From Asterias rubens (lineage: Eukaryota): a DNA stretch of 64,000 nt. Location of the stretch: positions 18,476,001 to 18,540,000 of the forward strand of contig NC_047064.1 of NCBI RefSeq assembly GCF_902459465.1. Reading direction: 5' to 3'. Shown here piece after piece: positions 22,123 to 64,000 of this stretch (position 1 is the first letter of the stretch; every line of letters begins with the position of its first letter). A model generated the notes under the pieces. The model had not been told where the DNA came from. It ran no database searches and worked only from the letters and a program-made list of their open reading frames with translations. The translations under genes and the position numbers were made by a program.

Positions 22123-22917
22123 CTAGAGTTTGTTCACCGAATTCTTAATGTCTTGTTTTTCATACTCATCTGCTTTCTCTCTCTGTTCTTTCCAGTCATC
22201 AGGCTTGATGTCAATGCCCAAGTCTTCAACTGTTTTTTTGAGTACTTCATATCCTGATTCAATACTTTGAATCTTTTCTTTCAAGTTTTCCATTTTTTTT
22301 AGTTTTTGAATGTCACTGCCTTCAATGTCCAAGCTTTCATCTGCGTCTTCTCCTGGTTTAGACTTTTGCATTTTTCCAATATAATAGTCCAGCATTAAAA
22401 GTGTCACCTTCTTCCATGCAGAACTATCCATGGGTGACAAGGTAATCCTATCATTACCCTTTAACTTGTTGCGGCCGGTTTTATCTGTGAAGGTCTTGGC
22501 AAAGTGAATGTTAAACTCGACCTTGTCATGTTTTTCTATGAATTGTATGATCTTGTCAGCACAGTCACCACACGGGGAGTAGTTGATGTAGAGTGTACAT
22601 GTATACTCAGGTGACTTATTCGCTGACTCAGGTGACTTATTCGCTGAATCAAGGTCAGACTCAAGGTCAGCCTCAAGGTCAGCCTTAAGGTCAGCTTGGA
22701 AAAGAAGCTCAGCATGAAGCTCATTAGGTTTGTTGTAATACATCTTGGGGGTCCCTTCTGGACTTTGCACAATGAGAATGGTTTCCTTGGGCCATTCAAA
22801 CCGGTCCTTGGGCCATTTCCCTTGAGAGTATCCCGACCTGATCATGACAGCAATGTCATGATCAAAAACATGATCAATGTCACGTTCAAAACTGTCAGGC
22901 TCGTATTTGCTTGCCAT
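22123..22917 (-). CDS. DA1: AID/APOBEC-like cytidine deaminase, 264 aa (MASKYEPD...)
   Basis: ELHAE ... LYINYSPCGDC ... FNIHFAKTF. The ATG lies 13 nt after the acceptor tttacag|; the longer ORF-track start is intronic. Confidence 0.9.
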   Translation of the reverse strand: MASKYEPDSFERDIDHVFDHDIAVMIRSGYSQGKWPKDRFEWPKETILIVQSPEGTPKMYYNKPNELHAELLFQADLKADLEADLESDLDSANKSPESANKSPEYTCTLYINYSPCGDCADKIIQFIEKHDKVEFNIHFAKTFTDKTGRNKLKGNDRITLSPMDSSAWKKVTLLMLDYYIGKMQKSKPGEDADESLDIEGSDIQKLKKMENLKEKIQSIESGYEVLKKTVEDLGIDIKPDDWKEQREKADEYEKQDIKNSVNKL

Positions 22918-23220
22918 GCTGATAGAATTTCTGTAAAAATACATAGGAAGTTTCCATGTTAATTCTTTTTGCAATATTAAAGAAACATTCTGCTTTAAAT
23001 TGTATGCAGTTTGTGTGTGATATAATAACCACACTTCACAATGGACCATCTTGTTACCTGAACTCTTAAAATTTGTGCCTCCCTCGTTATAGTAGTTAAA
23101 CTCCCCTCCCCTCCCCCTATTTGGAAATCATTTACCGAAACACATTAATTTATTATTATTTATATTTTTCATTTGTTTACTTATGTATTTATTTATTTAT
23201 TATGATGAATAGGGTAGATG

Positions 23221-23259
23221 GCCTTAGCTTTCGATCCAATCCGGACCTTCTTCAGAGGC
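23221..23259 (-). ncRNA. Minimal type-I hammerhead ribozyme motif in the Penelope pseudo-LTR
   Basis: GCCU-CUGAAGA-A-GGUCC-GGAUU-GGAUC-GAAA-GCUA/AGGC: stems I and II pair, palindromic stem III (AGCU), CUA cleavage triplet. Confidence 0.75.
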
Positions 23260-23772
23260 ATAAAACAAGTACAAACAAATACATATCCATTTATAGAAAA
23301 AGATAGGGGGAAAGGGATTAAGGAAAGGATCCAGAAAGAAGCGGGAAAATACCAGCCAATCAAAGTTTCTATTTCAGAAACAATATTGGTGGCTATGAAC
23401 CAATAGGAGTGAAGTGGCGAGGACAAAGGATGTTTAGAATGAAAGGAAGGGTTACTGGACCATAAAAGTGGTAAATGTATTGTTCGACAACAATGCAGGG
23501 AGACATGAAAGGGTAGGATTAGAGAGCAAGTTGCATCATGATGCAACTAACAATGGTCAATTAATAAGAATAGCAAGACCAAAGGTATGATGATTTTAAA
23601 AATAGGTATGAGGGACCTGTGGAAAAAAGGGGGGGGGGGGTTACTTACATCAGATAGTTACAGTGATGAATTTATAAAAACAACTTTAAACTAGGTTAAT
23701 TTATACTTTATGTACAGAATATATACAACATATAAGTTCTTAGGCAGAAGTGAAGTGGAGGGTAATGAGAAG

Positions 23773-26118
23773 TTATTTATCACCAGTGTTTATGTTAAGT
23801 CCAAAGGGTTTGACTGTCTTGAGTTGGTGAATCCAGTGTGATTCTCTATGCTTGCGGTGTGTGTCATCACCATTGCAAGCTTCAATCACCAGAAGTTCAA
23901 CATCACTGACACTATGATTGGGGCTGTTGAAGTGGATAGAGACTGGGTACGGTTTCTTAGTCTTTATGGAAGAGACATGATTCGCAAAGCGAAGACTAAG
24001 TTTGGTCTTAGTCTCTCCCACATATTGTAGCCCACATCTCTTACATGATATGACATAGACTACATTACACGTGCTGCATTCAGAGTCGGTCTTGATGTTG
24101 TATGAAGAGCCAGTGGTATGACTCTTCACCTTACATGAGGGCTTAATGTGCAGACACGTTTTGCATTTGGAACGGGTACATTTGTGACAGCCCAGTATAT
24201 CTGTCGGGGGTTGTGTTTGGACTGTACCGGGGGGAATTTTGGCCCTGACTAGTATGTCACCAAGGTTCTTAGGGTGGCGGAATGCAACCATGGGAACCTC
24301 AGTGATTGCTGAGTGTAACCTGCTGGAGGAGTGAAGTATAGGCATGTTATTATTGAGAATTGAGGGAAGTTTGGGTAATTTGGGGTGGAAGGTGGTGACC
24401 AAAGCAACTCTATTGGTAGGAGTTTTTTTAGCTCCCGTGTTAGTCAACAGAGTATGACGAGGTACGTTGAGAGCCCTGTTGATAGCAAGTTGGACCCTAC
24501 GTTCGCTGTGTCCCCTAGATACTAGGTGTTTCCTTAGCTCTGATGAGCGCCTCTTGTACAGGGTATCTGTGGAACAGATACGCCTGATACGTAAGGCCTG
24601 ACTGTAAGCAATTGCCTTCTTACAGTGACTAGGGTGACAGCTATTGGAGAGAAGGTACTGGTGGGTGTCGGTGGGTTTACTGTAAACATCTGTGACAAGG
24701 CCATTAGGAGACTTGGTTATTGTTACATCTAGAAAGTTCACACTGGTGAGAGATTGTTCGGTGGTGAACTTTATGGTGGGGTGAAATGAGTTGATATGGT
24801 CAATAAACTCATCCAAGCTATCTTGGTCACCACACCAGATGGAGAAAATATCATCAATAAATCTCCACCAAACTAGTGGTCGGTTGGGGGCGGAGGACAG
24901 GAGTCTGTCCTCCAACTGAGACATGAATAGGTTAGCATATGAGGGTGCCATTTTGGTACCCATGGCAGTACCCTGTACCTGTAGAAAATGCCTGTCAGAA
25001 AATGTGAAATTATTCTTCATTAGAATGTGGCTCATGAGTTCCTTAATATGACTCACTGAGGGGCGGGACTGATTACTAGCATTGAGGGCAGAGACACATG
25101 CACTCATGCCTTCATGATGGGGTATGTTAGTATACAGTGATGAAACATCAAAAGTAACCAAAATAGCAGAGTCAGGTATTTGGTGCTTGACCTCATCTAG
25201 TTTGTGGAGAAAGTCTTTGGTATCCTTGATGAAGGAAGGAATACGGCAGACTAAGGGTTTGAGGAAGCTATCGACAAACTCAGAAATGCGCTCTGCGGGG
25301 CTACCATTCCCAGATACAATAGGTCTCCCCGGGTTATTGGGCTTGTGTATCTTAGGTAGAAGGTAGAACCTTGCTGTACGGGGGTCATGTGGGAGGAGAT
25401 AGTTAAATGTATCTTTCTCAATATCATTGGCATTATAAATCTTAACCAGGGTATCACTGATATCTTGGGAGAAAGATTCAGTGGGATCAGAAGCACATTC
25501 AATGTAATGGTCAGTGTTACTGAGCTGTCTAAGGCCCTCAGCAATGTAGTCATGTGTGTTCATGACTACAACTGCGGACCCCTTGTCAGCCCGTTTAATC
25601 ACTATGTCTGGTGATTGGCAGAGTTGTGTAAGGGCGTGACGCTCATCTTGGGGGAGGTTATTGGGAGTAGGGGTACTGGGGGCCTTAAGAACCTCGGAGT
25701 TAACCGAATTGATGTATGTCTCTAGAGCCACATCTCGGTTCTTAGGGGGTACCCAAGTACTCTTTTCCCCGAAGCGGTTGCGGGGAATAGGTTGGGTCTC
25801 CACAGATGACTCGTCATCCATGGAGGGCTCTACATGAAAGTATTCACGTAGGCGTAACCTACGATTGAACTGGGCCATGTCCTGTTGGAAAAGAAGTTGG
25901 TTAGGCTCTCTGGGTGTGGGGCAAAACTTAAGACCCCTTGAGAGGAGTTTAACCTGTGGGTCAGTAAGGACCATGTCAGACAGGTTAACTACAGTATTGG
26001 TCTCTGGCAACCTAACAGTAGGAGGAGCAATGGTGGCTCTCTTACTGTGGAAACGTCTATGGGTGTGTTTCTTATGGTTAGCCAGGACATTCATACGTTT
26101 CTTGTTCTGTTTGTCCAT
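23773..26118 (-). CDS. Penelope-like reverse transcriptase / GIY-YIG endonuclease, 781 aa
   Basis: RT motifs FDVSSLYTNIP, QGTAMGTKMAP, WRFIDDIF; GIY-YIG NVVYVISCKRCGLQYVGET...RF..H...E; no stops or frameshifts. Confidence 0.95.
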   Translation of the reverse strand: MDKQNKKRMNVLANHKKHTHRRFHSKRATIAPPTVRLPETNTVVNLSDMVLTDPQVKLLSRGLKFCPTPREPNQLLFQQDMAQFNRRLRLREYFHVEPSMDDESSVETQPIPRNRFGEKSTWVPPKNRDVALETYINSVNSEVLKAPSTPTPNNLPQDERHALTQLCQSPDIVIKRADKGSAVVVMNTHDYIAEGLRQLSNTDHYIECASDPTESFSQDISDTLVKIYNANDIEKDTFNYLLPHDPRTARFYLLPKIHKPNNPGRPIVSGNGSPAERISEFVDSFLKPLVCRIPSFIKDTKDFLHKLDEVKHQIPDSAILVTFDVSSLYTNIPHHEGMSACVSALNASNQSRPSVSHIKELMSHILMKNNFTFSDRHFLQVQGTAMGTKMAPSYANLFMSQLEDRLLSSAPNRPLVWWRFIDDIFSIWCGDQDSLDEFIDHINSFHPTIKFTTEQSLTSVNFLDVTITKSPNGLVTDVYSKPTDTHQYLLSNSCHPSHCKKAIAYSQALRIRRICSTDTLYKRRSSELRKHLVSRGHSERRVQLAINRALNVPRHTLLTNTGAKKTPTNRVALVTTFHPKLPKLPSILNNNMPILHSSSRLHSAITEVPMVAFRHPKNLGDILVRAKIPPGTVQTQPPTDILGCHKCTRSKCKTCLHIKPSCKVKSHTTGSSYNIKTDSECSTCNVVYVISCKRCGLQYVGETKTKLSLRFANHVSSIKTKKPYPVSIHFNSPNHSVSDVELLVIEACNGDDTHRKHRESHWIHQLKTVKPFGLNINTGDK

Positions 26119-31418: not shown

Positions 31419-32390
31419 CTAAGAATATAGTAGATCGAAACTCGATCGTCCAGACCCATTAGCCAGCCAGTATTCCTCAAAAGGTGTTAGTTTTAGGGTA
31501 TCATCAAGTATTTCATCCTGAACCTCGTCTTCGTCCTCGCTCACTTCTTCAGGCCAGTATTCCTCAAAATATTCTTCAGGCCAGTATTCCTCAAAATATT
31601 CTTCAGGCCAGTATTCCTCAAAATATTCTTCAGGCCAGTATTCCTCAAAATATTCTTCAGGCCAGTATTCCTCAAAATATTCTTCAGGCCAGTATTCCTC
31701 AAAATATTCTTCTTCTTCAAAGATATCATGAAGTATTTGATCATGCACCTCGTCTGCTTCCTTTCTCATGGTTATCCATTTAGGAAATCTTTCAATGTCC
31801 AAGTATTTGAGTGCCGTATTCAATGACTCATATCCTGGCTTAGATCGAACCTCTTCCTGCAATTTTTGCATTTTTTGTATGTGAATGTCCAGTAATGATG
31901 TTGTCACAGACTTCCAATTGCTATCACTCATGGTTGACAAGGTAATCCCCTCTTGATACTTTAACTTTCGGAGGCCGTCTCCATCCTTGTAGGTCATGGC
32001 ATAGTGGATGTTAAATATAACCAAAGGATGGTTGTTTATGAATTCTATGATCCGGTCAGCACAATCAACACATGGCGAGTAGTTGATGTAGAGGTCGTAT
32101 TCGGTTTTCTGCTGGCGCATGCGCATCTTGGAAAAGTAGTCTTCAAGTGATAAAGATTGATCGGCTGACTCTATTTCATCTAGGAATGCACACTCGACAT
32201 GTTGTGCTCTTCCGTTTATGTGCTTTGGTTTGCTGTGGTTAATCTCGTTCAGTCTGTTACTTTGAACTACAAGAATGGCCTCCTGTGGCCATTTATATCG
32301 ATCTGATTCCACATGACGCCAATCCCGTACGCCCGTTCTGATCATGATTTCAATGTCATCTTCACAACTGTGCGGACTGCTTCTTGCCAT
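31419..32390 (-). CDS. DA2: AID/APOBEC-like deaminase, 323 aa, with (EEYWPEEYF)-repeat tail
   Basis: QHVECAF ... LYINYSPCVDC ... HYAMTY. The ATG lies 10 nt after the acceptor ttacag|. Confidence 0.9.
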   Translation of the reverse strand: MARSSPHSCEDDIEIMIRTGVRDWRHVESDRYKWPQEAILVVQSNRLNEINHSKPKHINGRAQHVECAFLDEIESADQSLSLEDYFSKMRMRQQKTEYDLYINYSPCVDCADRIIEFINNHPLVIFNIHYAMTYKDGDGLRKLKYQEGITLSTMSDSNWKSVTTSLLDIHIQKMQKLQEEVRSKPGYESLNTALKYLDIERFPKWITMRKEADEVHDQILHDIFEEEEYFEEYWPEEYFEEYWPEEYFEEYWPEEYFEEYWPEEYFEEYWPEEYFEEYWPEEVSEDEDEVQDEILDDTLKLTPFEEYWLANGSGRSSFDLLYS

Positions 32391-32883: not shown

Positions 32884-33205
32884 CTTGATAGTAACTATAA
32901 ATATAAATATCTCTGAAAAGAGCTGGTTTGGTCTCAACGTTTCTAACAGTATACTTTGCTCGTCTTCAGGAGAAGAGCAGAGTATACTGTTCGAAACGTC
33001 GAGACCAAACCGGCTCTTTTCAGAGCCAACACTCCATCAAAAGAGTTTTTACCCATGGTTGTAATAACAAATAATAATAATAAGACTCGTAATGCGCACA
33101 TATCCACCCTGCTTGTACCCGCAAGTTTACTATTAATTATTTATATTTATAGTTACTATTATTCTCCACACCATGCAAAGCTTCAAACACCATTTAATCT
33201 TCATC
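32884..33205. mobile_element. Second copy of the palindromic hammerhead mini-element, in DA2 intron 1
   Basis: Same arms and centre as 12320-12627; flanking repeat AATCTTCATCC; hammerhead (32932-32973) mutated; nested (ATA)n-GACTCGTAATGCGCACATATCCACCCTGC fragment with TTGTA duplication. Confidence 0.65.
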
Positions 33206-34849: not shown

Positions 34850-35475
34850 TGTTTGTAGGTACAATCAAAATGAAATTGGCAAGCACTAAAACTTTGTACA
34901 AAAGGACTCCAACATCAGTAGTTTATAGTTGTTCTTGGCAACAACTTTGTAGGTACAATCAAAATGAAATTGGCAAGCACTAAAACTTTGTACAAAAGGA
35001 CTCCAACATCAGTAGTTTATAGTTGTTCCTGGCAACAACTTTGTAGGTAGGTACAATCAAAATGAAATTGGCAAGCACTAAAACTTTGTACAAAAGGACT
35101 CCAACATCAGTAGTTTATAGTTGTTCCTGGCAACAACTTTGTAGGTACAATCAAAATGAAATTGGCAAGCACTAAAACTTTGTACAAAAGGACTCCAACA
35201 TCAGTAGTTTATAGTTGTTCCTGGCAACAACTTTGTAGGTACAATCAAAATGAAATTGGCAAGCACTAAAACTTTGTACAAAAGGACTCCAACATCAGTA
35301 GTTTATAGTTGTTTCTGGCAACAACTTTGTAGGTAGGTACAATCAAAATGAAATTGGCAAGCACTAAAACTTTGTACAAAAGGACTCCAACATCAGTAGT
35401 TAATAGTTGTTCCTGGCAACAACTTTGTAGGTACAATCAAAATGAAATTGGCAAGCACATAAAACTTTGTACAAC
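34850..35475. repeat. ~95-bp minisatellite, about 6.5 copies
   Basis: Unit TTTGTAGGTACAATCAAAATGAAATTGGCAAGCACTAAAAC... Confidence 0.9.
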
Positions 35476-35476
35476 A

Positions 35477-35805
35477 GTTTTTAGTTTGATAGTTTTTAGT
35501 TTGATAGTTTTTAGTTTGATAGTTTTTAGTTTGATAGTTTTTAGTTTGATAGTTTTTAGTTTGATAGTTTTTAGTTTGATAGTTTTTAGTTTGATAGTTT
35601 TTAGTTTGATAGTTTTTAGTTTGATAGTTTTTAGTTTGATAGTTTTTAGTTTGATAGTTTTTAGTTTGATAGTTTTTAGTTTGATAGTTTTTAGTTTGAT
35701 AGTTTTTAGTTTGATAGTTTTTAGTTTGATAGTTTTTAGTTTGATAGTTTTTAGTTTGATAGTTTTTAGTTTGATAGTTTTTAGTTTGATAGTTTTTAGT
35801 TTGAT
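35477..35805. repeat. 15-bp perfect tandem repeat (AGTTTTTAGTTTGAT) x~22
   Basis: Directly visible; produces the spurious VFSLI ORF. Confidence 0.95.
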
Positions 35806-36450
35806 ATGTCCCTTAAGACCCTTACATGACCCATTTTTAATTGTTCAGTGACGGCGAACAGACCTGCTTTGAGCCAGACGATGATCTGGACCAGCATGGT
35901 ATTTTATTTCCTTTTTGTTTTTACCATGTTGTGAAAAAAAAAAAAAAGAATTTCGATTTTCAGTTATTTCTTTTGACCCACCCACCCACAATTTCGAAAA
36001 AATATCAATTTTTGTTTTCATTGACTATTATGAATGGCACCTGTTTAAAATGTTCTTTAAAAAAAATAATTGAGCAATTTTTTTTTTACTAAGGCTACTG
36101 TTTCCAAAAGTTCACTACAAATCTGTGACTGTAAACCTTTTTCCACAATGATTGTGCTCCCTTTTTTGGATACTTTTTTTTCCATGGCATGAATCCTTGC
36201 TCACTGTGAATGAAGATGCACAAGTACAGTGTATGTAGTATAATACCTGTAGCCGTTTCAGTTTCATTAGTCGTCAAGTTTTTGAGAAAATCACAGAGCC
36301 ATGTTTTCAGGAGAGTAAGTTTATTGTAAATCTGTGGATAATGTGATGTTGTATCCTACAAAAAGTACCCAAACCCTTTACAAGGAAAACACAGTTTTGT
36401 CTTCATTTTAACCCATACACATTGAACCAAATGTGATAATAAATACTAAC

Positions 36451-48133: not shown

Positions 48134-48793
48134 CTATTCCCTTAGAATTTTTGCAAGTATTTCATTTTCAGTCTTGTCTGCATTCTCGCGCCACCATTTC
48201 CATTTATCAGAGTCTTTAATTAGGTCTAAGTGTTTAACTACTTTTGTTATTGACTCATACCCTGAATTATCCCGGCGAATAATCTCCAAAACTGGGATTT
48301 CTTTTTTGTGAAAGTCTAGAATTGCTGTTATCACAGACTGCCATTTACCACTATTCATGGTTGCCAAGGTTATGCGCTCTTGATGCATTAGCATTCTGAG
48401 GCCATCTCCGCCATCCTTGTATAACATGGCATAGTGGATGTGAAATTCAACAAAAGGTTGGTCGTTTATGAATCTTACTATTCGATCTGCACAATCAACA
48501 CATGGCGAGTTATTGATGTAGAGTTCATATTTGGTCATCTGCTGGAACATCAGAGGAACAGAGTCTTTGAATTCTGAGTTCCAACCACCAGACTCGACAA
48601 GCTTGAGATCATCTAGGAAGGCATCCTCGGCATGTTTTGGTGTATTTCCTCTTCTCAGTCTGCTGTGATAAATCTCCCTCAGTTTGGTACTTTGAACTAT
48701 AAGAATTGTTTTCTTTTCTTGTGAAGTTTGTTGTCCTTGGCTAAGCATGTTTTCAATGTTCTCTGTCCAATTGCTCTGCACGTTTCCTGCCAT
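48134..48793 (-). CDS. DA5: AID/APOBEC-like deaminase, 219 aa, short loop 1, no tail
   Basis: KHAEDAF ... LYINNSPCVDC; acceptor 13 nt upstream of the ATG. Confidence 0.88.
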   Translation of the reverse strand: MAGNVQSNWTENIENMLSQGQQTSQEKKTILIVQSTKLREIYHSRLRRGNTPKHAEDAFLDDLKLVESGGWNSEFKDSVPLMFQQMTKYELYINNSPCVDCADRIVRFINDQPFVEFHIHYAMLYKDGGDGLRMLMHQERITLATMNSGKWQSVITAILDFHKKEIPVLEIIRRDNSGYESITKVVKHLDLIKDSDKWKWWRENADKTENEILAKILRE

Positions 48794-49504
48794 ACTGGTA
48801 TGACACCTGTAAAAGAACAGACAAAATGCACATCTCAGCTTTTGGTAATATCTTAAAAGCATGTGTGTAATTCAGACTTTGAACTTAGCGATTGCCCATT
48901 TGACAAATATGAGCGGAAACAGGGGCGGGCAAGTAAATCTTTTAAAAGTGCAGGGAGGGGGGAAAGAACAGAGCAATGCATGTATGGGCCAGGGGAAAGC
49001 AACGCTGGGCCAGGAGGGAAGGGGGGGGGGGGCCAAGCCAGGCAGGGGGAAGAAAAGGGAAGTGCAGGGGATAAAGCAGGAGGCAGAGCAAGACATCAGA
49101 GGGGGTAGGGACAGAATGGTAGGGGGCAGGGTGGGGTAGGTAAAGTCAGGCAATAGTGTGGGGGGGGGGGGCGGAGGTGGGTTATGAAGGTTTAAAAACC
49201 TGCTAAGCAAATTTGTAAAACCCGCTAACAAACAAAGCATGGAAACCTTGGCATTATTACGGTTTGATTTGTGTAAGCTTTAGAGAAAGTTAAAGACCTC
49301 ACTTTTTAAAATGCATTTTGTCAGGGCTGAGATTAACGTTATTGTGTGCAAAACCCCCAAATTAAATAATTTTATAGATCTCAACCATTGTCAATTGAGT
49401 AAAAGGCTGGAGCATTAAACAAATTATTTGTATGTGATATATACATACTTTGTTTAACCCATACATTCACTTAACTCTGTAAAATATGATAAACATGTAC
49501 TTAC

Positions 49505-49738: not shown

Positions 49739-49749
49739 TCTTTCCTATG

Positions 49750-50502
49750 GGACATCTGTGTCAAATCAACCAGTTTTTCATCAGAATGATTGGATGTGGC
49801 TCAAATGAACACATACAAAAAAGCTAAGTCATACTCCATGTCGTTTTCGAGATATGACCCATTGAAATTTGGTCAAGGCGGCCATTTTGTACTCGCGCGA
49901 GACGCGAAAAGTGATTTTTGTGATAATTTCCGACTTTGAAAGCTCATAATTTAGTTATTGTACCAGGTAGAGAGCTCAAATTTGGTATTCCATCTTACTT
50001 CTTGCCAAATTTCATGAATCTGCACTCAATTTAAGAGTACATGTATCTCATTTAATTTTCTAGTTATGGTCACCTAAAGTAGGCACTTTAATCAGCCGAA
50101 AGTGTTTTTTGTGATAATTGGGGTCACCCTGTGCCCACATGAGGGGTCAAATGAAACCTATATTCCCTAGTTATTATCTATGGGTGCATGTCTTTACCCA
50201 TAAGCAATTATAAGCTCACCAATGCATTCATTCAGAAATAGCATGGACCCAAAGTTGGTTCCTGCCAGAAAAAGGTAAAAAAGACCCCGCCCGTCTTGAC
50301 CCCGGTTGACCCCGCGATCAATTGAAACATTTTTTGAAATTGATACCAGTTAAACATATATATTATATCTACTTATACACCAATTTTCAGCTTTGGCACT
50401 CAACTCCTTCATTGTGTGGTGGCACATCCAATCATTCTGATGAAGTTTCATCAAAATCTGAGGGGGTCACCTGGGGACCACTGGTTGATTTGACACGGAA
50501 TG
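49750..50502. mobile_element. TIR element inserted immediately upstream of the DA5 kB site
   Basis: TGTGTCAAATCAACCAG ... CTGGTTGATTTGACACGG; absent from the homologous DA6 upstream region. Confidence 0.6.
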
Positions 50503-52544
50503 ACCCCTATACCTTTTTTTTTTTTTTGGGTGCCCTTCAGAAGTCATTCAATGGGGAACGTTGTCATCCAGCACTTTTGCATAGCAAAATATTTTGACAC
50601 CAAATTTTGTGCACAAAGAACATTGGTAATATTGAGTAGCAAATGACAACTTTTGAGTAGCAACTGACACATTCTGCTATATACAACAAATGTTCACTGC
50701 TTAATAACAAAAACCTATGCATCCACCCAGTGGTGCAGTAGGTTAAGAAACAGGGTTGCCTAGTGGGCCATCCACCCCCCCCCCCAAGTGTCTTAGCCAG
50801 GAATTTGAAAGTGGGAGTGCAAACTGAAAAAGTGGGAGTGCAACCTAAAATCACTACAAAAAAATAGATACGTGTGCGTAGCACACAACACGAGCTCGCA
50901 GCGCCAAGTCTGTCTCACCCCCCCCCCCCCCCCACCCCCCTCTTAAGGGCCCTGGAAGCATTTCTGGTACCTATTTCTGTTACAAGTAAACTATTTTGAT
51001 TTAATTTTTTATTTTTTTTTCAACTCGAAAATGAGAGGCTTTAAAGCACAGATATTATACAGGTGATCGACGTCCACTATACATTATTAAACTCTATAAA
51101 ATGTGTCTGGGTCAATAGGCCAGTTCAAAGCAGTTACTTGGACCATGGAGCTGTGCTTGGACCCATTTAGCCTGAAATGGTTCAAAAGTGATCAAATAAT
51201 GCAGTACAAGTTTGCTGTCAACAAAATATTTTTTGGCATGTGTTACTCTTGATACAAAATTTTGCTTAAAGACTAAAAAAAAAATGAAGAGGTATTGAAG
51301 AAATTAAGAGTTATCATTTACTAATGTTAATTCTATCCATTCTTGTCCATTCGATTTCAGAACAATAGGCCTAAGGTCGTGAAGCTGATAATAGTTTTTG
51401 TATTTAATTTAGACAAATCAATTAATATGTAAAATAATTATTCACACAAGTATTTGCAACCAATCAAAATGCCAAGAGTGATTTACATGTACCATAATTG
51501 TTTGCTTAATGTAAACTGACTGATCATGGTAATTAATATTTTCCTTTGTATGTGTTTAGGTTTCATAACGTTTAAGTCTTATAGGTTGTTTAATTGTTGA
51601 AACTGGGTCAAAGGCAATTTGTAAACAGTCTGCGGTGAATAAAGAACAAACAGTTACAAAAGACAGTGCCATTTAAGTAGTTCCACTGGGCACAAAAACG
51701 TACCATGCATTGAAAAATAAATTTGGGAGGTCTATCCCCCCCCCCTACAGCAAAACCGACTTGAGATTTGAAAAGAAACATGAACCAGTTTTTGAACCTT
51801 TCGAGCGGAAAATAAACATCGTTTTGTCAACTGCATTAACACCCAAGAGATGCAAACATTGAAATCCAAAAAAGTCTCACCGGCTCACCGTTTACGCAAT
51901 TTAGGGCTGTAGAATCATCAATAATGTTTTTATAGATGGTTGCTGTAAAATAAAATCATCAAAATGTCACATAATTAGCGAAAAAATGATTAAAAAACCC
52001 AAAAGCGGCAAAAGGCCAGCGTGTACGTGTTTCCAGCCGTTGCAACTATCAAATCTTCGTGATATTGTCGCACAATGTTGTAAGTAGACTGGTGCTTTGT
52101 TTATAGCAACATTTTACTACGACGAAGCATAAGGATCCAGTCTATCCATAAATTATAAACAACCAACATATACGGATCAGGCAAATCTTTCGACGGTGGA
52201 GGTAGTCGTGCTTCGACGTACATCCAAAGATCGTCACGAAGAACACAAAAAACTAACCCAGAAAATGATGGGACAGTGACAAGTAAATAGAGCATTCCTG
52301 GCACAAACTAGGCATACTACTGCAGTGCATAGGCATGATGCAGTTTGGAATGCGATCGTGGCGTACAATCATGCTCCCGACGTGCTACTCCTAGAACTAT
52401 TTCAGTTTCGTCCGGCTGAAACCGAAATAGTTCTAGGAGTACCGACGTGCCAGGACCCATTCAATGCCTGTAGGCGCCTACAGAGGGGAGGGGATGGGGG
52501 AGGGAATCGTTAGGGATTCAAAAACGTTCTTGTGAGAATGTATT

Positions 52545-53372
52545 TTGAAACGTAAGCGTAGTTGCAAATCTTGAAACGTAAGCCTAGCTTGACTCGGGAT
52601 TGAAAGCGTTATTTTTTATTATAGCGTAACAAATCTAAAAAATGTATATGGATTGTATAGTAGCTGCATAGCTTGGAACGTAACCATATCTTTTGGAACG
52701 TAAGCATATCTTGAAACGTAAGCGTAGCTAGGTATCTTGGAACGTAAACGCAGCTGCGTATGGAGCGTAAGCGTAACTTGACTCAGGATTGAAGCGTACC
52801 TTTTGTAAATATAGCGTAACTTGAGAAGGAACGTAAGCAAAAACTTGGAATGTAGGCGTATCTTGGAACGTCATATCTTGGAAGGTAAGCGTAGCTGGAT
52901 ATCTTGGAACGTAAACATAGCTGCGTATGGAACGTAAGCGTAACTTGACTCAGGATTGAAAGCGTACCTTTTGTTATTATAGCGTAACTTGACGAAACGT
53001 AAGAGTATCTTGTAATGTAAGCATAGCTGAGAAGCTGTGTAGCTTCGTAACCTTATGTTTTGGAACGTAAGCATATCTTGGAACGTAAGCGTAGCTAGGT
53101 ATCTTGGAACGTAAACGTAGCTGCGTATGGAAGGTATACGTAACTTGACTCAGGATTGAAAGCATACCTTTTGTAATTACAGCATTACTTGAGAAGGAAG
53201 GTAAGCAAAAACTTGGAATGTAAGTGTAGCTTGATATCTTGCAACGTAAACATAGCTGCATATGGAACGTAAGCGTAGCTTGACTCGGCTTGAAAACGTA
53301 CCTTTTGACATTATAGCGTAACTTGAAGGAACGCAAGCGTAGCTGAGTAGCTGCGTAGCTTGGAACGTAACC
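52545..53372. repeat. Degenerate GGAACGTAAGCGTAGCT-type tandem array with higher-order units
   Basis: Directly visible; no coherent ORF. Confidence 0.8.
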
Positions 53373-56300
53373 AAATAATACCTCAACAATCTCAAAAATA
53401 ACACTTCATTCACAGAATTAAAAAATATTTTTAGACAAAATTATGCTTTGAGAGAGTTTTGTTGAACTTTTTTTTTCAACCTTTTGTACAAAATTATTAT
53501 TCAACTGTTCTTTTTTCAATCGGGGGCTCCGGTTTTTTTAATCCCTTTTTTCTTCTTCATAAAACATTTTTAAATCTACTCACACAATAACACTGTCAAT
53601 ATAACAAAATGCAGTATTTCTACATTTGGACATCATCAATCTTTTTTTATTGTTACCTGAAAACTCCTAGCAAAATAAAATTAGGAGCCATGAAACAAAA
53701 CAGAGCATAATATTGGAACGTTGTGATCATAAGAAATAACGGATTTGACACGAGGTGTACCGACTGACAAACCCACGATGACAAACATGTACTCCCAACC
53801 CCTCCCAAGCTCACGGCGAGACCCGCAAGCTTGGAGTTCATAGCGCCTGGGATTACACCTCCAGCCCCCCACGAGACATGGCATGCGCTGTATGGTATAA
53901 TGCCCCGAGGCTTACGTTGTGATTGCGCCACGCCTTGGGCTATACACGGACTCTTTGAATGCGAATCTTACGTAAGATTTTTCACCATTATTTACATTTT
54001 GTAGCGATAACTTGAATACATGATCTTTTTCGTCAATTACTCGTTAATAATTTTGTAAAAAAAAAAGATTTAAATTTGGTTTGGTAAGTTACTGACGGCT
54101 GGAAGTAAAACTAGCCCGGAAGGTCACGCGATTGTTTGTACCACTTTTTGGTTAGAACAATCACGCGACCTAAGTTTTTGTTTTAAAATGCTCAAAAACG
54201 GCAAAATTTGATGATTTTTTTTATGGACCGTTCTTCTTCATACCTGGAAGACTGCTGAATTCAGTTCTTAGTCTATTTTGTAGCCCAAATAGCCCTATTC
54301 GGCCGGTGTGTCCCTTTAAAACAAAGTCTGTGTGTCTCGCTTGCGTTGTGTAATTTGCACGTGCATTGTGTAATGTGTGGTTTGTGCGTTGTGTCTTGTG
54401 TGGTCGCAATGTGGTCAGCGTTTTCGAGGCAACTTCGAATGATTGTTTTATGGTTGTGTAGTTGAAATTTTGATTCAAAAGGAAGAAGGAAATCTGGTAA
54501 AACCAAATCTAATTTTACTCACTGCTGTTTAAACTGTTCAACAACAACAAAATAATAAAAGAAGTTCAGTAATTTTCACTGAAATTATTATACAGCACGG
54601 CTTCACCCAAGCCATGCATAAAAAATTTGCCCGTGTTTTCAGCCCAACTGGCCGTGCTAACACCCCCCCCCGGAAGTCGTACATGTAACTTATATTTGAT
54701 TTGTTTAAAATTGAAATTGAAGTTAAACAGGAAACAAGAAAAGGAAAGACAACAGCCATGATGTTCTTTCTACCTAAGTCAGATTTATTTTGCTCTTGAA
54801 AAAATCTGAAAAAATTGTGTTTTAATACAGCTTGAAATCTATACTATTAAAAGCTTAACCCGCGCCGTCTTGGAATTGAAAATTAGAAGGTCCAGTGGCA
54901 TGGCATCCTTGTGGAATCCAACACGGTTATGTCGTTACAGACGTCGGGTTGAAGTCTACAAAACCCTGAACCGAACTCCCTCTTACGAGTTGTCTGATTG
55001 GCTGGAGTCACGAGCGATATCTCCTTACATGTGTGGTTGTCTGGTTTTGATATGGGCCACCTGTTGGTCTAAGGGGGGGGGGGGGAGCTGTACGCTGCAC
55101 ACAGAGCCACCTCTTTAGGTTTGAAGTGGGTGGCAACCTTGGACTCCCATTAACATTCCAGAGTGACTCATTGATGTTTCGTAGAGGGGTAAATAGCATT
55201 GTGTATATACCATTTTGTACAGGGGGGTTTAATTTCGCATGTTAAATAAAAAACATTAGGCTTTAATACATGCATCTGTTACATATGTGTTTATTACAAT
55301 TAAGTCACTCATGTAGGCCTACCCAACTTTCCAGCATTTTTTAAACGTATCAAACATCAGCAACCCATTGTTGTGAAACTTTATTTGTTCCATTTAACTC
55401 TGCACCGTTAGTGGTACAGTCCATATGTCATCCCCCACACATAGAACGTACACACGCAAAAGTTGAAACATTTTCAAAAAGAAAGTAAATACATTACTGA
55501 TTCTTTTCATATACATTGTATAGGTTTTGCCAGTTAAACCTACAAAAGAGTACATGAAATCACCGTTTAAGAATAGTAAGCTTTCATAGTTACGAACTTT
55601 GTGAAACATCAACGGCTGTTTTGAAGCTGTAAACGAACATTCCATTCAAAGTTCTGAAGCAACAAAATTGTTAGAACGCAGTTTGGTCCGGACTCAGGAT
55701 GTAGATTTTGCCAAATCCGTTTTGTATTAAGCAATCGGCCGTCGGGTTTTGTTATCGAAAGAGCCTTCATGTGCAGCTGAATCGGGTACTTTTTACGAAT
55801 TTCTCCTTACAAAATTAACCAAACTGGCCTACAAACCCTTAAAACAACAAGGCAAATGTTTTCTGAAAGTGAATTAAGTGAGAGGATGTAGGGGTAGCTG
55901 GCATACAAACCCTCAAAATAACTAGGCAAATGTTTTCTGAAAGTGAATTAAGTGAGAGAATGTAGGAGTAGTTATTTAAGACCAATAAAATTACCGTTTC
56001 TATTATTTTAGTTCGTAGGGTTCCACAGATAATTATGATAACATATATAATTGGATGTTTTATCAGGGGACTTCGTCACGCGGGGCGCGCGCCCCGGCGG
56101 ATGTTGACCAGAAAGTTTACATGAGAATTAATTGATATGAGAATAAACTAAAAATTAATGAGGCCGACGCTCTGTTACTCCAAAAAGCGGTGGCAAAAAC
56201 AGTAGATTAGATGTTGCACAGCATGTTCCGAAAAATCGCTTTATTTGGTGCTCAGACAACTTTGTTTGCGTCGTTGGACGTACGCTCAATAAATTACGAT

Positions 56301-58118
56301 GAATGGGGCCTTAGATTCTAAAATCGTGTACACCTCATTGGAAACAAAGCAAACAATATTCAACAGTTATAGCAACCAATCATTAAATATTTTTATTTTC
56401 AATACAATTTTGCAGAAATTGACTTTGTCGTTCAAGTCCATACCAACTGGCGCGTTTTTTTATATTTTTATCTGCTGTATACCAGAACTTCTTCGAAGCT
56501 TCCTTTTCAGTCAGATAAACTCCGCGGCTATTAGTGGCTGTGATTATGAGTTTGTTTTAAAAGAGGATACCACTTTCATACAAGCCTTTTTAGTCGGATT
56601 TCTTCTCTGCTATTACTATTAGCAGCGGTGATAATTGTTGAGGGGGGAGACCAGACTTAGACCACTCAAATCCGTGGCTATCGGTGACTATGGATTTGTT
56701 GCTAAGGGTACCAAATACCACTGCTGATTCCACATTCAGCGTGATATACATTGTCCGATTGGCCCATCTCCATATAAATTAACCAAAACTGGATGTACAG
56801 ACCCTCAAAATAACAAGGCAAATGTTTTACAAAGTTCGTAACTATAATGAAAGCAGTTTGGGCGGGACTCAGGATGTACATTATGCCAAGTGTAACTGAA
56901 TTATACCAAATGTGCTCAACACAATAAAATAAGTGTGTCATTGGAGCAGTGTATGTGCTATATTTTTAGTCGTCTAAGCATTATTACCCTTACAGTCATC
57001 TTAGCTGGGAAATACTCAGTGCAGTGGATAAAATTGACACAATGACAAAAGCCCATTGAATTTAAACTATGCGTAAAAGAGGCGAAACATAATCCACATT
57101 ACGGATAATGCGTTGGCCCACTCGATCAACACTAAAATATTACGAAATACCCTACATATCATGCCAAGTACCATCATTGCCAAGTATACCCATCCCCAAT
57201 ATTAAAGCTCAACTCCAGAAACAAACACCAATTCCTTTAGTTGGAGACTGCAAGAGAGAAGGTGAGGAGAGGAGGCGATGCGTCGCGACATTTTACAACT
57301 AAGTTGTGCACGCTCAACAATTAATTTTTATCAAAATACAACATTAATGACAAATTTCCATACCGATCATAAATACAATTTCTTATCCAATACTACGAAA
57401 TGATTATTACCTGTAAGAATACCTCCCTTGCCCCCACATTATCTTTTACAACATGTGTATACTAGAATCCTCCTCATCTAGCGGGGTGCCGCGCGCCCGC
57501 TAGTTTCTATTAAAGCCATTGGACCCTTTCGTTAAACAGTGTTGTCCTAAGGCCCACACTTCGTGTATCACAACTTATATATAAAATAACAAACCTGTGA
57601 AAATTTAGGCTCAATCGGTCATCGGAGTCGGGAGAAAATAATGGGAAACCCACCCTTTTATCCGCATTTTCGCCGCGTCATGACATGTGTTAAAATAAAT
57701 CCGTAATTCTCGACATCGAGAGTTTATATTGTTTTACTGTTTTCTCAAAAAGTAAAGCATTTCATGGAATAATATTTAAAGAGAAGTCTTTCACCACTAC
57801 CTTCTGTAAACCCTGAAAGTTATTTGTAAATACGGAACTTTTTTCTTTTCTTCCTGTACCGAAAGGGTCCAATGGCTTTAAAGCCTACACCATGTGTACA
57901 TGTGCAGTAGGTCAGCACTTGTGTAATGCAATAAAATATTCCTACTTATTTCCAGCGGACCAAATATCTTGCCAGAAACAATTAAGTTGCCCCTTCTTAA
58001 AATTGTCACACCTTATAAAATGTGTGTTTGAGATTGTGCAGGCCATGCAAAAAAAAGTTGTGTTTGAGATACATGTCATAGTCCATGATTTCAGATTATA
58101 CACAATTGCATGGCAGTA

Positions 58119-58127
58119 GGGAATTCC
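58119..58127. promoter_or_regulatory. Upstream kB-like site (DA5 enhancer-like module)
   Basis: GGGAATTCC in the context TGCATGGCAG...CACC, shared with 46602. Confidence 0.4.
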
Positions 58128-60107: not shown

Positions 60108-61505
60108 CTACTTTTTTGAAGGTCTCAAAGTCTCGGTCTCGGACCCTCCGGTCTTGGTCTCGAGTTGCCGGGTCTTGGTTTTGGTCTCAACTTGAGGAGT
60201 CTTAGTCTTGGTTTTGGTCTTGGGCTTGGTCTTGGGCTTGGTCGCGACTTCCTGTGCCTTGGTCTTAGTTTTGGTTTTAACTTGTCGAGTCTTGGTCTTG
60301 GTCTCGACTTGCTGTGTCTTGTTCTTGTTTGTGGTCTTGGTCTTGGTCTTGGTCTTGGTCTTGGAAACAACAACGGCAGGGGGCAGAGCAGGAAAGGGGG
60401 AAGGGCAGGGTAGTGGGATGGTCAGGGTAGGGGTAAGAGCAGGGTAGGGGGAAGAACAGGGCAATGGGAGGAGCAGGGCAGGGGGGAGAGCAAGGCAGGT
60501 GGAAGAGGAGGGGAGGGGAAAAAGCAGGGTAGGGGGTAGAGCAGAGGAGGGAGAAGAGCAGGGGAGTGGGAACAGCAGGGCAGGTGGCAGAGCAAGGCGG
60601 GTGGAAGAGGAGGGTAAGGGGAAGAGCAGGGAAGGGGGAAGAGCAGGGTAGGGGGCTGATGTTGTAATAAGGGGGAAGAGCAGAGCAAGGGGAAGGGCAG
60701 GGTAGGGAGCAGAGAAGGGCAAGGGGCAGAGCGGGGCAGTGGGACAGGGCTGTCTTTTTCCCCGTCCAGATCTTGATGTCCTCAATCCAGACTTGCCTTG
60801 GGCCCCCTCACTCTCATTGTACAATTCCCTTTGTATTTTTGCAAGTGTTTCTTTTGCAGTCTTGTCTGCTTCCTCTCTCCATACTATCCATTCCTTAGAG
60901 TCCTCAATGTCGTAGTGTTTGACTATTTTCGCTAATGACTTGTTCCCCGACTTATCACAACGATTTTGTTTCAAAATTTTGATAGTTGGTCTGCAAATGT
61001 CTAGAGTTGCTGTTATCACAGACTGCCATGTATCGCTATTCATGGTTGCCAAGGTTATGCCCCTTTGATGCGTTAACTTTCTGAGGCCATCTCCGCCATC
61101 CTTGTATAACATGGCATAGTGGATGTGAAATTCAACGGAAGGTTGGTTGCTTATGAATCTTACGATTCGGTCCGCGCAATCAACACATGGTGAGTAGTTG
61201 ATGTACAGTTCGTATTCCGTCATCTGCCGGGACATCGGAAGAACAGAGTCTTTGAACTCTGAGTTCCAACCACCAGACTCATCCGACTCGAGTTCATCTA
61301 GGAAGGCGCACTCGGCATGTTGTGCTGGCTTTCTTTGCCTCAGTCTGCTGTGATAAATCTTCTTCTGTTTGGTACTTTGAACTATGAGAATGGTTTTCTT
61401 TTGCCATAAATATTTTTTTTCCTTTAAATGTCTTGGGTCCTGTACGCCTGTTCTAAGTATGATTGCAGCGTCCTCTTTCCATCGGTTGTCCACACAGCTT
61501 ACCAT
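60108..61505 (-). CDS. DA6: AID/APOBEC-like deaminase, 465 aa, with Pro-rich and Lys/Thr-rich repeat-derived tail
   Basis: QHAECAF ... LYINYSPCVDC; acceptor 13 nt upstream of the ATG; the ORF stays open through two repeat elements. Confidence 0.85.
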   Translation of the reverse strand: MVSCVDNRWKEDAAIILRTGVQDPRHLKEKKYLWQKKTILIVQSTKQKKIYHSRLRQRKPAQHAECAFLDELESDESGGWNSEFKDSVLPMSRQMTEYELYINYSPCVDCADRIVRFISNQPSVEFHIHYAMLYKDGGDGLRKLTHQRGITLATMNSDTWQSVITATLDICRPTIKILKQNRCDKSGNKSLAKIVKHYDIEDSKEWIVWREEADKTAKETLAKIQRELYNESEGAQGKSGLRTSRSGRGKRQPCPTAPLCPLPFSAPYPALPLALLFPLITTSAPYPALPPSLLFPLPSSSTRLALPPALLFPLPCSSPSSALPPTLLFPLPSSSTCLALPPALLLPLPCSSPYPALTPTLTIPLPCPSPFPALPPAVVVSKTKTKTKTKTTNKNKTQQVETKTKTRQVKTKTKTKAQEVATKPKTKPKTKTKTKTPQVETKTKTRQLETKTGGSETETLRPSKK

Positions 61506-61911
61506 AGTGGTACGATGCCTGTAAAAGTGCAGACATGCACATTATGTTTATTTGGTCATTTGAAAAGCACATCTTTTTCTTTTAGGTCAGCACGCATGTG
61601 CGCGGCACCAAGGTATAATTTTTTTAAATTTTTTTTTCACTTTTGAGGTTTGTGCATGCCGTGAGTTTCAATGGTAAATTGAACCTTTGTGTCGGTTTGT
61701 TGAAACAAAAATTGTGAGTTTTGTTGCAAAGTTACCTAGCCTTATCATCATAATTTAAAAAGTAAGGCTCCTGAAGCATTGCAACTTCATGAGAATGTAC
61801 GCCTCGGTTAGCATTGTCTAAACATGCACAAGAATTAAAACTTAAAAAATACTGGTTTTCTCCGCAGTGTGTCAGTTTGTGTCGGTGACGATATGATCAG
61901 TATGTACTTAC

Positions 61912-61985
61912 AATTTGTAGATGGTTGGTTCTGCCAGTTGGTCTTTAAGCTTGCCTTTTGTTTAAGTTTAAATTAAAAAAATTGT
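61912..61985 (-). other. Putative non-coding first exon of DA6
   Basis: Donor TT|GTAAGTAC at the homologous position. Confidence 0.55.
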
Positions 61986-62077
61986 GGCTTACACTGAAGA
62001 AAGCATGAGCAATTTATGCAACAATTTATGTCATATATGTAGACTATGGACCATGCACTTGGCAATAGAAATGGAGG

Positions 62078-62105
62078 TATTGCAAGCCAGCTGAGGGAAA
62101 GCCCC
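62078..62105 (-). promoter_or_regulatory. DA6 kB + C/EBP-like module
   Basis: TATTGCAA ... GGGAAAGCCCC. Confidence 0.65.
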
Positions 62106-63302
62106 TTTCTATCATGTCTATCTTGGTAAAAGAGGAAATGACACATTTTGCAAAGCATTTTGCTCTGCTATACATGTGTACAAGGGAAACATGGTCACTG
62201 CTTAATCAAAAAGAAGCTGAGCACCCACCCAGTGGCGCAGTAGGTTAAAGACATTGGACACTATTGGTAATTGTCAAAGACCAGTCTTCTCACTTGGTGT
62301 ATCTCGACATATGCATAAAATAACAAACTTGTGAAAATTTGAGCTCAATCGGTCATCAAAGTTGCAAGATAGTAATGAAAGAAAAAACACGCTTGTCACA
62401 CAAATTGTTGTGCTTCCAGATGCTTGATTTTGAGACCTCAACTCTAAATTTGAGGTCCCGAAATCAAATTCATGGAAAAGTACTTCTTTCTCGAAAACTA
62501 CTCCACTTCAGAGGGAGCCATTTCTCACAATGTTGTACGCTATTAATGTCTCCCCATTACTCATTACCAAGTAAGGTTTTGTGCTGATAATATTGTTGAG
62601 TAATTACATTACATAGTGGGCCATCCAACCCCCCCCCCCCCCCCCCCCCCCCGGAAGTTGTTACTTACTTTTGATTTGTTGAAATTGAACAGGAAACAAC
62701 TAAAGGAAACAACTAAAGGAAAGACAAGAGGCTTTAAGTCTGATTTACAATTTATTTTGCTCTTAAAAAAAATCTGACAAATTGAGATTAAACTAAGCTC
62801 GAAATTTCTATTATCTTGTACTCAATAAAATATTCCTACTTTTTTTTCCCCAACAGACAACAGACCAAATTTAATGCCTGGAACATATTCAGATTTGTAA
62901 AACATGTCTTGAGGTTTTGCTGGCCATGAAAATAAAATGTTGTGTTTGCGATGTGTGTGTCAAATAAAGTTTCTTTATTAAAATCCTTATTAAAATCCTC
63001 CACTCTTTGTTCATGACATACACACAAACAAATTGAGGAATAGTAATTGAAATGATGAAAATATCAATAAATAATAAGTATCTATCGCACAATTAAACAT
63101 AACTATATTATCGCTAACAGAAGAGGGATTGCCCCGGTGTTTCTGGCAGTGGTTACTTATGGATGTACTGTGCCATTTATTAACTGTTCAGTGGGTCTCA
63201 TAATCAGAATCGAGAAAATGTCCCAAGTATTTATGAATCACTACATTCTACGACTCCTAAAGCAACAACAAAACAAACTCCAGACTGATTTGTGATTCAG
63301 AC

Positions 63303-64000
63303 CTACACGTATGTAAGAAATAACCTAATAATAATAATAATAATAATAATAATAAGACTTGTAATGCGCACATATCCACCCTGCTGGGTGTTCAAGGCGT
63401 TCTCCTCGTCATGAGAACTCTCCCCTTCCTCTTCCTCAGAACTTTCCTCCCCCTCCTCCTCCTCCCCCTCCCCCTCCTCCTCCTCTTCCTCACTTGAGTT
63501 CCTCAATCCAGATTCAACTTGGGCTCCCAATATCTCCTCATACCCTTCCCTTTGTATGTTAGCAAGTTTTTCTTGTTCAGTCTTGTCGTCATTCTCTCTC
63601 CACCATGTCCATTTATCAGAGTTTTTAATTATGTTTAAGTATTTAACTACTTTTGCTAATGACTCATACCCTGAATTATTCCGACGAATTTTCTCCAAAA
63701 CTGGGATTTTTTTTTGGTGAAAGTCTAGAATTGCTGTTATCACAGACTGCCATTTACCACTATTCATGGTTGCCAAGGTTATGCGCTGTTGATGCGTTAG
63801 CATTCTGAGGCCATCTCCGCCATCCTTGTATAACATGGCATAGTGGATGTGAAATTGAACAGAAGGGTGGATAATTATGAACTGTATGATTCGTTGTGCA
63901 CAATCAACACATGGCGAGTTATTGATGTAGAGTTCGTATTTTTTCATCAGAGGAACAGAGTCTTCAAATTCTAAGTTCCAACCACCAGACTCGTCCGACT
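63303..64000 (-). CDS. DA7: AID/APOBEC-like deaminase, 5'-partial at the window edge, poly-Glu tail
   Basis: Frame open from the window edge (SDESGGWNLEFEDSVPLMKKYELYINNSPCVDC...); very similar to DA5. The HxE motif lies outside the window. Confidence 0.85.
   Translation of the reverse strand, partial: SDESGGWNLEFEDSVPLMKKYELYINNSPCVDCAQRIIQFIIIHPSVQFHIHYAMLYKDGGDGLRMLTHQQRITLATMNSGKWQSVITAILDFHQKKIPVLEKIRRNNSGYESLAKVVKYLNIIKNSDKWTWWRENDDKTEQEKLANIQREGYEEILGAQVESGLRNSSEEEEEEGEGEEEEGEESSEEEEGESSHDEENALNTQQGGYVRITSLIIIIIIIIIRLFLTYV

Follow-up and report, generated by a model that had tools for sequence, protein, structure and literature searches.

AID/APOBEC-like deaminases (AADs) are the mutators of vertebrate antibody diversification and antiviral restriction, and the expansions of this family in invertebrates are thought to serve immunity. 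To our knowledge, little is known about how the invertebrate paralogues differ from one another. We describe here a cluster of seven homologous minus-strand open reading frames (ORFs), DA1 to DA7, which lie as tandem paralogues between positions 22123 and 64000 of a 64,000-nucleotide (nt) stretch of the starfish Asterias rubens (contig NC_047064.1, positions 18,476,001 to 18,540,000; hereafter the window). The seven genes carry one predicted AAD core and one C-terminal helical module, after which their products end in very different ways, from no further residue in DA5 to 238 amino acids (aa) of low-complexity sequence in DA6. Our observations support a mechanism of repeat expansion and stop drift, with both gains and losses of stop codons. 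We consider it somewhat better than an even bet (probability about 0.55) that the resulting tails are by-products of repeat instability, mostly neutral or weakly selected, that are read to the first stop in a fast-evolving family.

The closest described systems are other echinoderm AADs, which form lineage-specific tandem expansions (Krishnan et al. 2018, PMC5889660; for sea urchin SpAIDL, Liu et al. 2018, PMC5956068). The Asterias cluster resembles the invertebrate AADs of these two studies in its H[AV]E...PCxxC core, its mostly single-exon frames, its tandem clustering and its variable loops, and further in the turnover of copy number between individuals or species and the presence of mosaic paralogues. 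Unlike the AADs described there, however, the Asterias paralogues differ mainly by tandem-repeat extensions behind a conserved helical module. A term search of the two papers returned no mention of low-complexity tails or of starfish members, and a full-text search of the literature returned no description of repeat-made tails or of Asterias AADs.

Two further comparisons are instructive. Patiria miniata XP_038058122.1 and Acanthaster planci XP_022083831.1 and XP_022111726.1 share with the Asterias proteins the deaminase core and a terminal module, GY..L...L.I....R...AD....L..I. In Patiria and Acanthaster a variable helical or repeat segment, for example (GHDEA)x8 in XP_022111726, lies between the deaminase domain and the terminal module, whereas in Asterias DA2, DA4, DA6 and DA7 the variable part is appended after that module. 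Lamprey CDA1-like/CDA2 are, like the members of our cluster, paralogous AADs that differ chiefly at the C-terminus, and the passage on them in section 12 of PMC5889660 cites alternative exon splicing as the cause. The C-terminal diversity in Asterias comes instead from repeat arrays and stop drift within one exon.

Extension of a C-terminus by loss or gain of a stop, together with expansion of coding minisatellites, is a general evolutionary mechanism. What we find here is the same in principle: a stop moves into the former 3' untranslated region (UTR), and slippage yields in-frame low-complexity sequence. What is notable is that several independent tail cases are concentrated in one 42-kb gene cluster.

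Seven tandem deaminase genes

The window has a G+C content of 36-46% and contains no N. The coding exons are as follows.

22123-22917, minus strand: DA1 coding exon, 264 aa (lengths here run from Met to stop), with an identical protein in NCBI/UniRef for this genome
31419-32390, minus strand: DA2 coding exon, 323 aa, with an identical protein in the annotation of this genome
38752-39480, minus strand: DA3 coding exon, 242 aa
43379-44632, minus strand: DA4 coding exon, 417 aa, matched at this place by a gene call of the same length in this genome
48134-48793, minus strand: DA5 coding exon, 219 aa, with C-terminus ...ILRE followed by TAG
60108-61505, minus strand: DA6 coding exon, 465 aa
63303-64000, minus strand: DA7 coding exon, partial, with its 5' end beyond the window and its stop at 63303-63305

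All seven genes match Pfam NAD1 (PF18778), SNAD4 (PF18750), APOBEC_N (PF08210), APOBEC2 and other profiles, at 39-64 bits against cut-offs of 25-27. The NAD1, SNAD4 and APOBEC_N scores are 47-64 bits (54-56 bits for DA1 with SNAD4/NAD1), and precomputed PF18785 matches are on record for the cluster proteins. DA1-DA6 contain HAE or HVE plus SPC[VG]DC, and the in-window part of DA7 contains PCVDC; the H, E, P and both C of H[AV]E...PCxxC are invariant alignment columns with the spacing typical of the AAD family. The cores of DA1-DA6 are uninterrupted ORFs with both motifs intact, and the in-window part of DA7 is likewise open. An AlphaFold2 model of the DA5 core is of moderate quality, with a mean predicted local distance difference test score (pLDDT) of 69 and a predicted template modelling score (pTM) of 0.67. 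Its top 50 Foldseek matches in the PDB are exclusively APOBEC3H/3G/3F/3C/3A/3B, AID, APOBEC1 and APOBEC2 (probability 1.00, template modelling (TM) score 0.33-0.53). Profiles, motifs and modelled fold together confirm DA1-DA7 as predicted AID/APOBEC-like zinc deaminases of the helix-4 division.

Inspection by eye of the DA2-DA6 N-termini found no hydrophobic h-region of a signal peptide; these termini are polar or charged (e.g. MARSSPYSCGYDIEIMIRTG). Because of this, we read the SNAD4 score as general AAD similarity. A profile search of 1.84 billion representatives found few close relatives of the cluster proteins. The nearest named proteins belong to Asterias amurensis, and the relatives outside Asterias are of low identity; after P0012 at 1e-39, the next HMMER matches come at about 1e-17 to 1e-16.

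One helical module followed by very different tails

The C-terminal helical module is common to all copies and consists of SGYE...W...R[EK]..D plus about 13 helical residues; DA1 has a 27-aa insert ahead of it. Divergence begins after the module. An earlier sequence-only reading of this DNA had described one conserved core followed by radically different low-complexity tails, and alignment confirms this description. Arrays detected by Tandem Repeats Finder (TRF) cover 71% of the bases of the tails; over the remainder of 20000-64000 the figure is 8%, and within the cores it is 2%. The pattern goes beyond chance. In gene order, the tails, arrays and related segments are as follows.

DA1 tail: 1 residue past the module
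22605-22695, minus strand: DA1 in-frame core arrays in the loop between HAE and PCxxC; TRF, 21 bp x2.2 and 12 bp x3.9 (ANKSPE.., ADLxADLx)
31419-31712, minus strand: DA2 tail, 97 aa, net charge -36
31545-31712, minus strand: DA2 27-bp array; TRF, 6.2 copies at 100% identity, encoding EEYWPEEYF
31466-31543, minus strand: DA2 distal tail; self-BLAST matches it to the C-terminal helix of the same gene (31688-31768) at 75% nt identity, as a diverged duplicate
38752-38808, minus strand: DA3 tail, 18 aa, net charge +3, hydrophobic
43379-43948, minus strand: DA4 tail, 189 aa, net charge -48
43588-43904, minus strand: DA4 acidic/Cys array; TRF, 18-bp units in a 144-bp higher-order repeat x2.2, with autocorrelation peaks at 144 and 18
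43310-43578, minus strand: DA4 R/G/Y array; TRF, 21/42-bp units
DA5 tail: 0 residues
48071-48133, minus strand: 20 codons and the earlier TAG of DA5, once its tail and now part of the 3' UTR
60108-60824, minus strand: DA6 tail, 238 aa, net charge +27
60378-60744, minus strand: DA6 pyrimidine-rich satellite; TRF, 17-nt unit in about 21 copies, encoding a Pro/Leu/Ser-rich block
60151-60364, minus strand: DA6 hexanucleotide microsatellite; TRF, GTCTTG on the plus strand, encoding (KT)n, with 27-bp variants
63303-63545, minus strand: DA7 tail, 80 aa, net charge -21
63402-63491, minus strand: DA7 purine-rich array; TRF, GAG/GAA/GGG with 3-, 15- and 21-bp periods, encoding E/G/S
63326-63385, minus strand: DA7 distal insertion, absent from Asterias amurensis; 52 nt that are 94% identical to window 33062-33113, then (ATT)10

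The arrays sit in frame inside the DA2, DA4, DA6 and DA7 tails, downstream of the folded domain, and in four of the seven genes an array starts within about 100 nt of the core end. In an AlphaFold2 model of DA4, residues 248-417 have pLDDT below 50 and lack secondary structure, with the core at about 90; the DA4 tail is thus predicted to be disordered.

The tail contents given by the sequence-only reading for DA2 ((EEYWPEEYF)x6), DA4 (D/E-C-G-Y repeats and an R/G/Y block), DA5 (none) and DA6 (Pro-rich, then K/T-rich) are all present, and others need amendment. The DA7 tail, which had been called poly-Glu, is Glu-rich but finishes in poly-Ile that comes from the (ATT)10 microsatellite (TRF: (TAA)10 on the plus strand). 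DA1 and DA3, said to have short charged ends, do have short ones (1 and 18 residues), but the end of DA3 is a hydrophobic stretch (FIMMLKMFKAICGRT). Finally, the paralogues do diverge after the core, though not completely, since a tail stem of about 60-70 nt (GYEE..GAQ.ESG) is common to DA5, DA6 and DA7 before they part.

Stops and arrays differ between paralogues and between species

The cluster is syntenic in A. amurensis, for which we merged loci L004, L001 and L003 into one comparison block; nt identity is 91-95% including the intergenic DNA. DA3-DA7 have orthologues in this block. Orthologues of DA1 and DA2 were not found in it, and a different paralogue of 374 aa (L001:16426-17550) occupies their place. 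We rejected this gene as a DA1 orthologue, since its identity to DA1 is only 37%. The window contains no orthologue of it; a 17-aa unit (VDQPSSSEKDQEDLVKP) occurs about nine times in the loop between its catalytic motifs, and it may be inactive because HAD replaces HAE.

The clearest change of stop is in DA5. Where it has TAG (48134-48136), its A. amurensis orthologue and the paralogue DA7 have GGG, and L002, a metagenome contig in ENA, has GGA; these sense codons make the window stop a recent gain. The 20 codons that follow it, now 3' UTR, are an open tail in A. amurensis (GYEEREGMERAQGESGYQDCF). L002 has a separate TAG two codons beyond the position of the DA5 stop. The older DA5 TAG, at the end of the former tail, aligns with CGG in DA6; GGA AAA then follows in both genes, and the DA6 satellite starts about 15 nt further on.

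L002 is a mosaic whose 5' part resembles DA6, whose core resembles DA7 (98% identity) and whose 3' part resembles DA5, and a second ENA metagenome contig, L006, joins a DA4 5' part (96%) to a DA2 3' part (99.5%). These mosaics may be assembly chimeras, or else recombinant paralogues such as those of PMC5889660. Because of their mosaic structure, we rejected these contigs as population evidence and used only the stop position of L002, with caution.

The DA6 satellite has the signature of a non-coding-type satellite that is being read, rather than that of a coding-shaped repeat. Its 17-mer has 16 matches in the window, 15 of them in the array, where 0.07 would be expected, and autocorrelation in the proline block is strongest at lag 17 (0.71, vs 0.67 at lag 51). 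Because a 17-nt unit is not a multiple of three, the ORF traverses the satellite in all three frames, and it stays open only because nearly every base of the sense strand is a pyrimidine. The orthologous ORF in A. amurensis is 443 aa, and over 651 nt of tail the two species differ by 4.3% substitutions, with only two indels, of 6 and 60 nt, both in the K/T microsatellite.

A C/T-rich tract with poly-C runs lies at 48930-49170 on the minus strand, about 150-400 nt upstream of the DA5 coding exon, and such a tract is kept upstream of both DA5 and DA7 in A. amurensis, as P-rich ORF-like translations at L004:1718-2149 and 9392-9877. The tract upstream of DA5 (49170-48930) is similar in composition to the DA6 satellite, but we rejected this likeness as evidence of common origin, the identity being only 62-67% over low-complexity sequence.

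The distal tail of DA7 has been replaced. Its insertion is absent from the A. amurensis orthologue (L004:1980-3176), the window stop comes soon after it, and the downstream DNA that holds this stop is read in another frame in A. amurensis. The acidic array also differs in copy number between the species: in A. amurensis an 18-nt unit (EGEESS) has expanded to 4-5 copies.

In DA4 the R/G/Y array runs about 70 nt beyond the TAA stop (43379-43381), in a different frame (YDETGYPPYGVVFGRYGRGYI), and does likewise in A. amurensis; the stop thus lies inside the array. The A. amurensis orthologue, XP_071789177, is 411 aa long and 93% identical, and over 552 aligned nt of tail there are 2.7% substitutions and one 18-nt indel. 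The DA2 array begins within the last residues of the conserved helix. The 18-aa tail of DA3 is identical in A. amurensis XP_071788216; in a DA3-like gene of a third species (L005, a more distant assembly; 83% nt identity), a 4-nt indel shifts the tail frame and the stop. Two proteins from other samples that resemble a frameshifted DA1 (P0013 and P0004) were set aside and not used.

Within the genus, then, tails have been truncated (DA5), frameshifted (the DA3-like gene) or replaced (DA7). The sequence-only reading had placed a hotspot at the 3' end of the single coding exon, with tails arising there de novo by repeat expansion and stop-codon loss. The hotspot is borne out by the TRF arrays and by the copy-number differences between the sister species. 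It is not exclusive: in-frame arrays also occur in the core loop, and for that reason we regard repeat tolerance as a trait of the family, with the 3' end as its main but not its sole site. Shifts of the stop codon are supported by the aligned stop and sense codons of paralogues and orthologues, and they include gains (the DA5 TAG and the separate TAG of L002) as well as losses. Repeat expansion stands as a source of the tails, but de novo origin is not the whole account, given the helix duplicate in DA2, the insertion in DA7 and the non-coding-type satellite in DA6.

A model for the gain and loss of tails

We propose that little constrains the DNA just 3' of the helical module and that tandem repeats form there readily. 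Minisatellites and microsatellites would be built by slippage or unequal exchange (27 bp, 18/144 bp, 21/42 bp, 6 bp and GAR triplets); one array would be the 17-nt pyrimidine satellite of non-coding type, and one tail would have taken in an insertion that carries a dispersed element. The arrays hold few or no stop codons because they are purine- or pyrimidine-rich on the sense strand. The ORF would then run on to the first stop, which point mutations and small indels could shift in both directions, and the proteins would gain intrinsically disordered extensions, strongly acidic in three cases and in one case Pro-rich and then basic. We infer that the tails are translated and have little selected function, and on present evidence we consider functional readings of the tails less likely than near-neutral churn.

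The cluster displays the birth and loss of predicted protein ends at base-pair resolution between two sister species, through satellite read-through, stop gain and frame change. Should no tail function, it would be a clean case of near-neutral C-terminal churn and a warning against inferring function from low-complexity ORF extensions; should any tail function, it would represent a new axis of deaminase regulation.

Are the tails selected?

A possible objection is that the tails are selected, paralogue-specific disordered modules (autoinhibitory nucleic-acid mimics, localisation or condensate tags, or decoys for antagonists), for which the repeats only supply the variation. We think this doubtful. 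Several observations weigh for it or against near-neutral churn. First, the DA4 and DA6 tails are kept open and in frame in both species, with indels of only 18, 6 and 60 nt, although the flanks contain many indels between the window and A. amurensis that are not multiples of 3. Second, the tails of DA4 and DA6 have a Nei-Gojobori dN/dS (the ratio of nonsynonymous to synonymous change) of 0.40 and 0.47, respectively, which is not above that of several cores (range 0.18-1.16). Third, compared with a random placement of the observed substitutions on matching bases, synonymous changes in the DA6 tail are nominally in excess, and only in the coding frame (12 of 26 changes, P=0.03 uncorrected). Fourth, the strong acidity of DA2, DA4 and DA7 is convergent, and three independent tails of this kind could reflect selection rather than purine-repeat bias. 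Fifth, annotation pipelines include the tails of DA2 and DA4 in the genes they call. Low-complexity or repeat C-terminal parts also recur in distant AADs, both in Acanthaster XP_022111726 with its (GHDEA)x8 and in P0090, P0108 and P0154, which have Q/P/N-rich or charged repeat tails, and in-frame arrays are tolerated even in the core loop.

Against these points stand the following. The tests compare only two species and have low power at 3-7% divergence; at this distance a frame is expected to stay open by chance, since substitutions placed at random introduce no stop into the tails with a probability of 0.38-0.59. Each indel in the DA4 and DA6 tails spans a whole number of repeat units (18 nt or 6 nt). 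The acidity is a consequence of GAR-rich repeats, for which the Glu/Asp-rich end of the core is the seed. A nonsense mutation removed the DA5 tail, the distal DA7 tail was replaced and the DA3-like tail was frameshifted; moreover, the DA4 array is cut by its own stop, and the 17-nt unit of DA6 points to a non-coding origin.

In the random-placement test only the DA3 core and the DA6 tail stand out. The DA4 tail has 5 synonymous changes out of 15 (P=0.22). The DA3 core, with 7 of 12 changes synonymous (P=0.007), is under purifying selection, and the cores of DA4, DA5 and DA7 show no synonymous excess. We disregarded the selection values for the DA7 tail, as these were inflated by non-homologous alignment. 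The window and A. amurensis are too close to decide on tail constraint, which is weak or below detection, and the tails are not visibly less constrained than most of the cores. The roles suggested in the sequence-only reading (localisation, condensate partitioning, acidic autoinhibition and binding of viral antagonists) gain no support from these data.

Are the tails part of the proteins?

It could also be that splicing or cleavage ahead of the arrays keeps the long tails out of the proteins, for instance at the donor-like motif GGTATGAG, which is found both in the SGYES codons and where core and tail meet in DA5 and DA7, and that the long ORFs are annotation artefacts of repeats poor in stops. 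We judge this unlikely. One point for it is the A. amurensis model XP_071789176.1 (578 aa; L004:10001-15520), a predicted double-domain deaminase that splices out of the DA5 core and into the whole DA4 exon; the donor, G|GTATGAG, lies in the SGYES codons (about window 48255-48265), and the acceptor is the normal one of DA4, 13 nt upstream of its ATG (about 44645). Yet this fusion model still ends in the full DA4 tail, and no donor motif was found at the DA6 core-tail junction.

The alternative reading frames of the tails are nearly open too, on the antisense strand as well; in the DA4 tail this holds for another sense frame and an antisense frame. Tail openness therefore comes from composition, and we rejected it as evidence of coding. 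Some members also lack a gene call: in A. amurensis this is so for the orthologues of DA6 and DA7, and DA5 is not called in the locus listing of this genome that covers it. The models of this genome (assembly GCA_902459465.3) nevertheless carry the tails of DA2, DA3 and DA4 as contiguous ORFs, as do those of A. amurensis for DA3 and DA4. A single coding exon is consistent with these annotated models and with the acceptor used by XP_071789176.

A hexamer scan found neither AATAAA nor ATTAAA inside any tail. For DA4-DA7 the first poly(A) hexamer comes 13-254 nt past the stop, which argues against polyadenylation ahead of the arrays; for DA1-DA3 the scan is uninformative, with no hexamer within 800 nt after the stops.

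A more ambitious version of the functional reading is that capture of satellites at the 3' end gives each paralogue a disordered regulatory tail, with acidic DNA-mimic autoinhibitors in DA2, DA4 and DA7 and a Pro-rich, then basic tail in DA6, and that DA5-DA4 splicing adds double-domain enzymes, so that the cluster would be an invertebrate counterpart of APOBEC3 diversification that works through tails and not through loops alone. We offer this as a long shot.

It is highly improbable that the cluster is decaying and that the tails are early signs of pseudogenes losing their proper stops: the absence of synonymous excess in the DA4, DA5 and DA7 cores, the frameshifted DA1-like (P0013) and mosaic DA2-like (L006) copies from other samples and the absence of DA1 and DA2 from the syntenic A. 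amurensis block would fit, but the six complete cores are uninterrupted with intact motifs, the in-window part of DA7 is open, the DA3 core shows purifying selection, lineage-specific AAD expansions normally have a high dN/dS and a turnover of copies (PMC5889660), and the broken contigs are short metagenome assemblies that are possibly chimeric.

Genomic neighbourhood

The deaminase cluster lies antisense within the ATIC gene (AICARFT/IMPCHase), of which plus-strand exons are found at 14259-14726 and 16043-16567 (Pfam PF01808); in A. amurensis the 592-aa ATIC gene spans L001, L003 and L004. Between DA1 and DA2, at 23773-26118 on the minus strand, is a Penelope-like retroelement with an intact 781-aa ORF for reverse transcriptase and GIY-YIG endonuclease, in the DA1-DA2 block, which the syntenic locus of A. 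amurensis lacks. A hammerhead ribozyme was sought with Rfam in 23050-23800 at E<=1 and in the gathering scan of the whole window, with no match in either.

Between DA6 and DA5, about 8 kb (49748-57504) is without an A. amurensis counterpart, and the spacing of the two genes is 11.3 kb here vs 3.1 kb there. Tandem repeats also occur between genes: at 34852-35806, between DA2 and DA3, a 94-bp array (x6.5, 96% matches) is followed by a perfect 15-bp array (x22, 100%). The only Rfam match in the window is a histone 3' UTR stem-loop at 12405-12449 on the minus strand (RF00032, 35.4 bits against a gathering threshold of 34).

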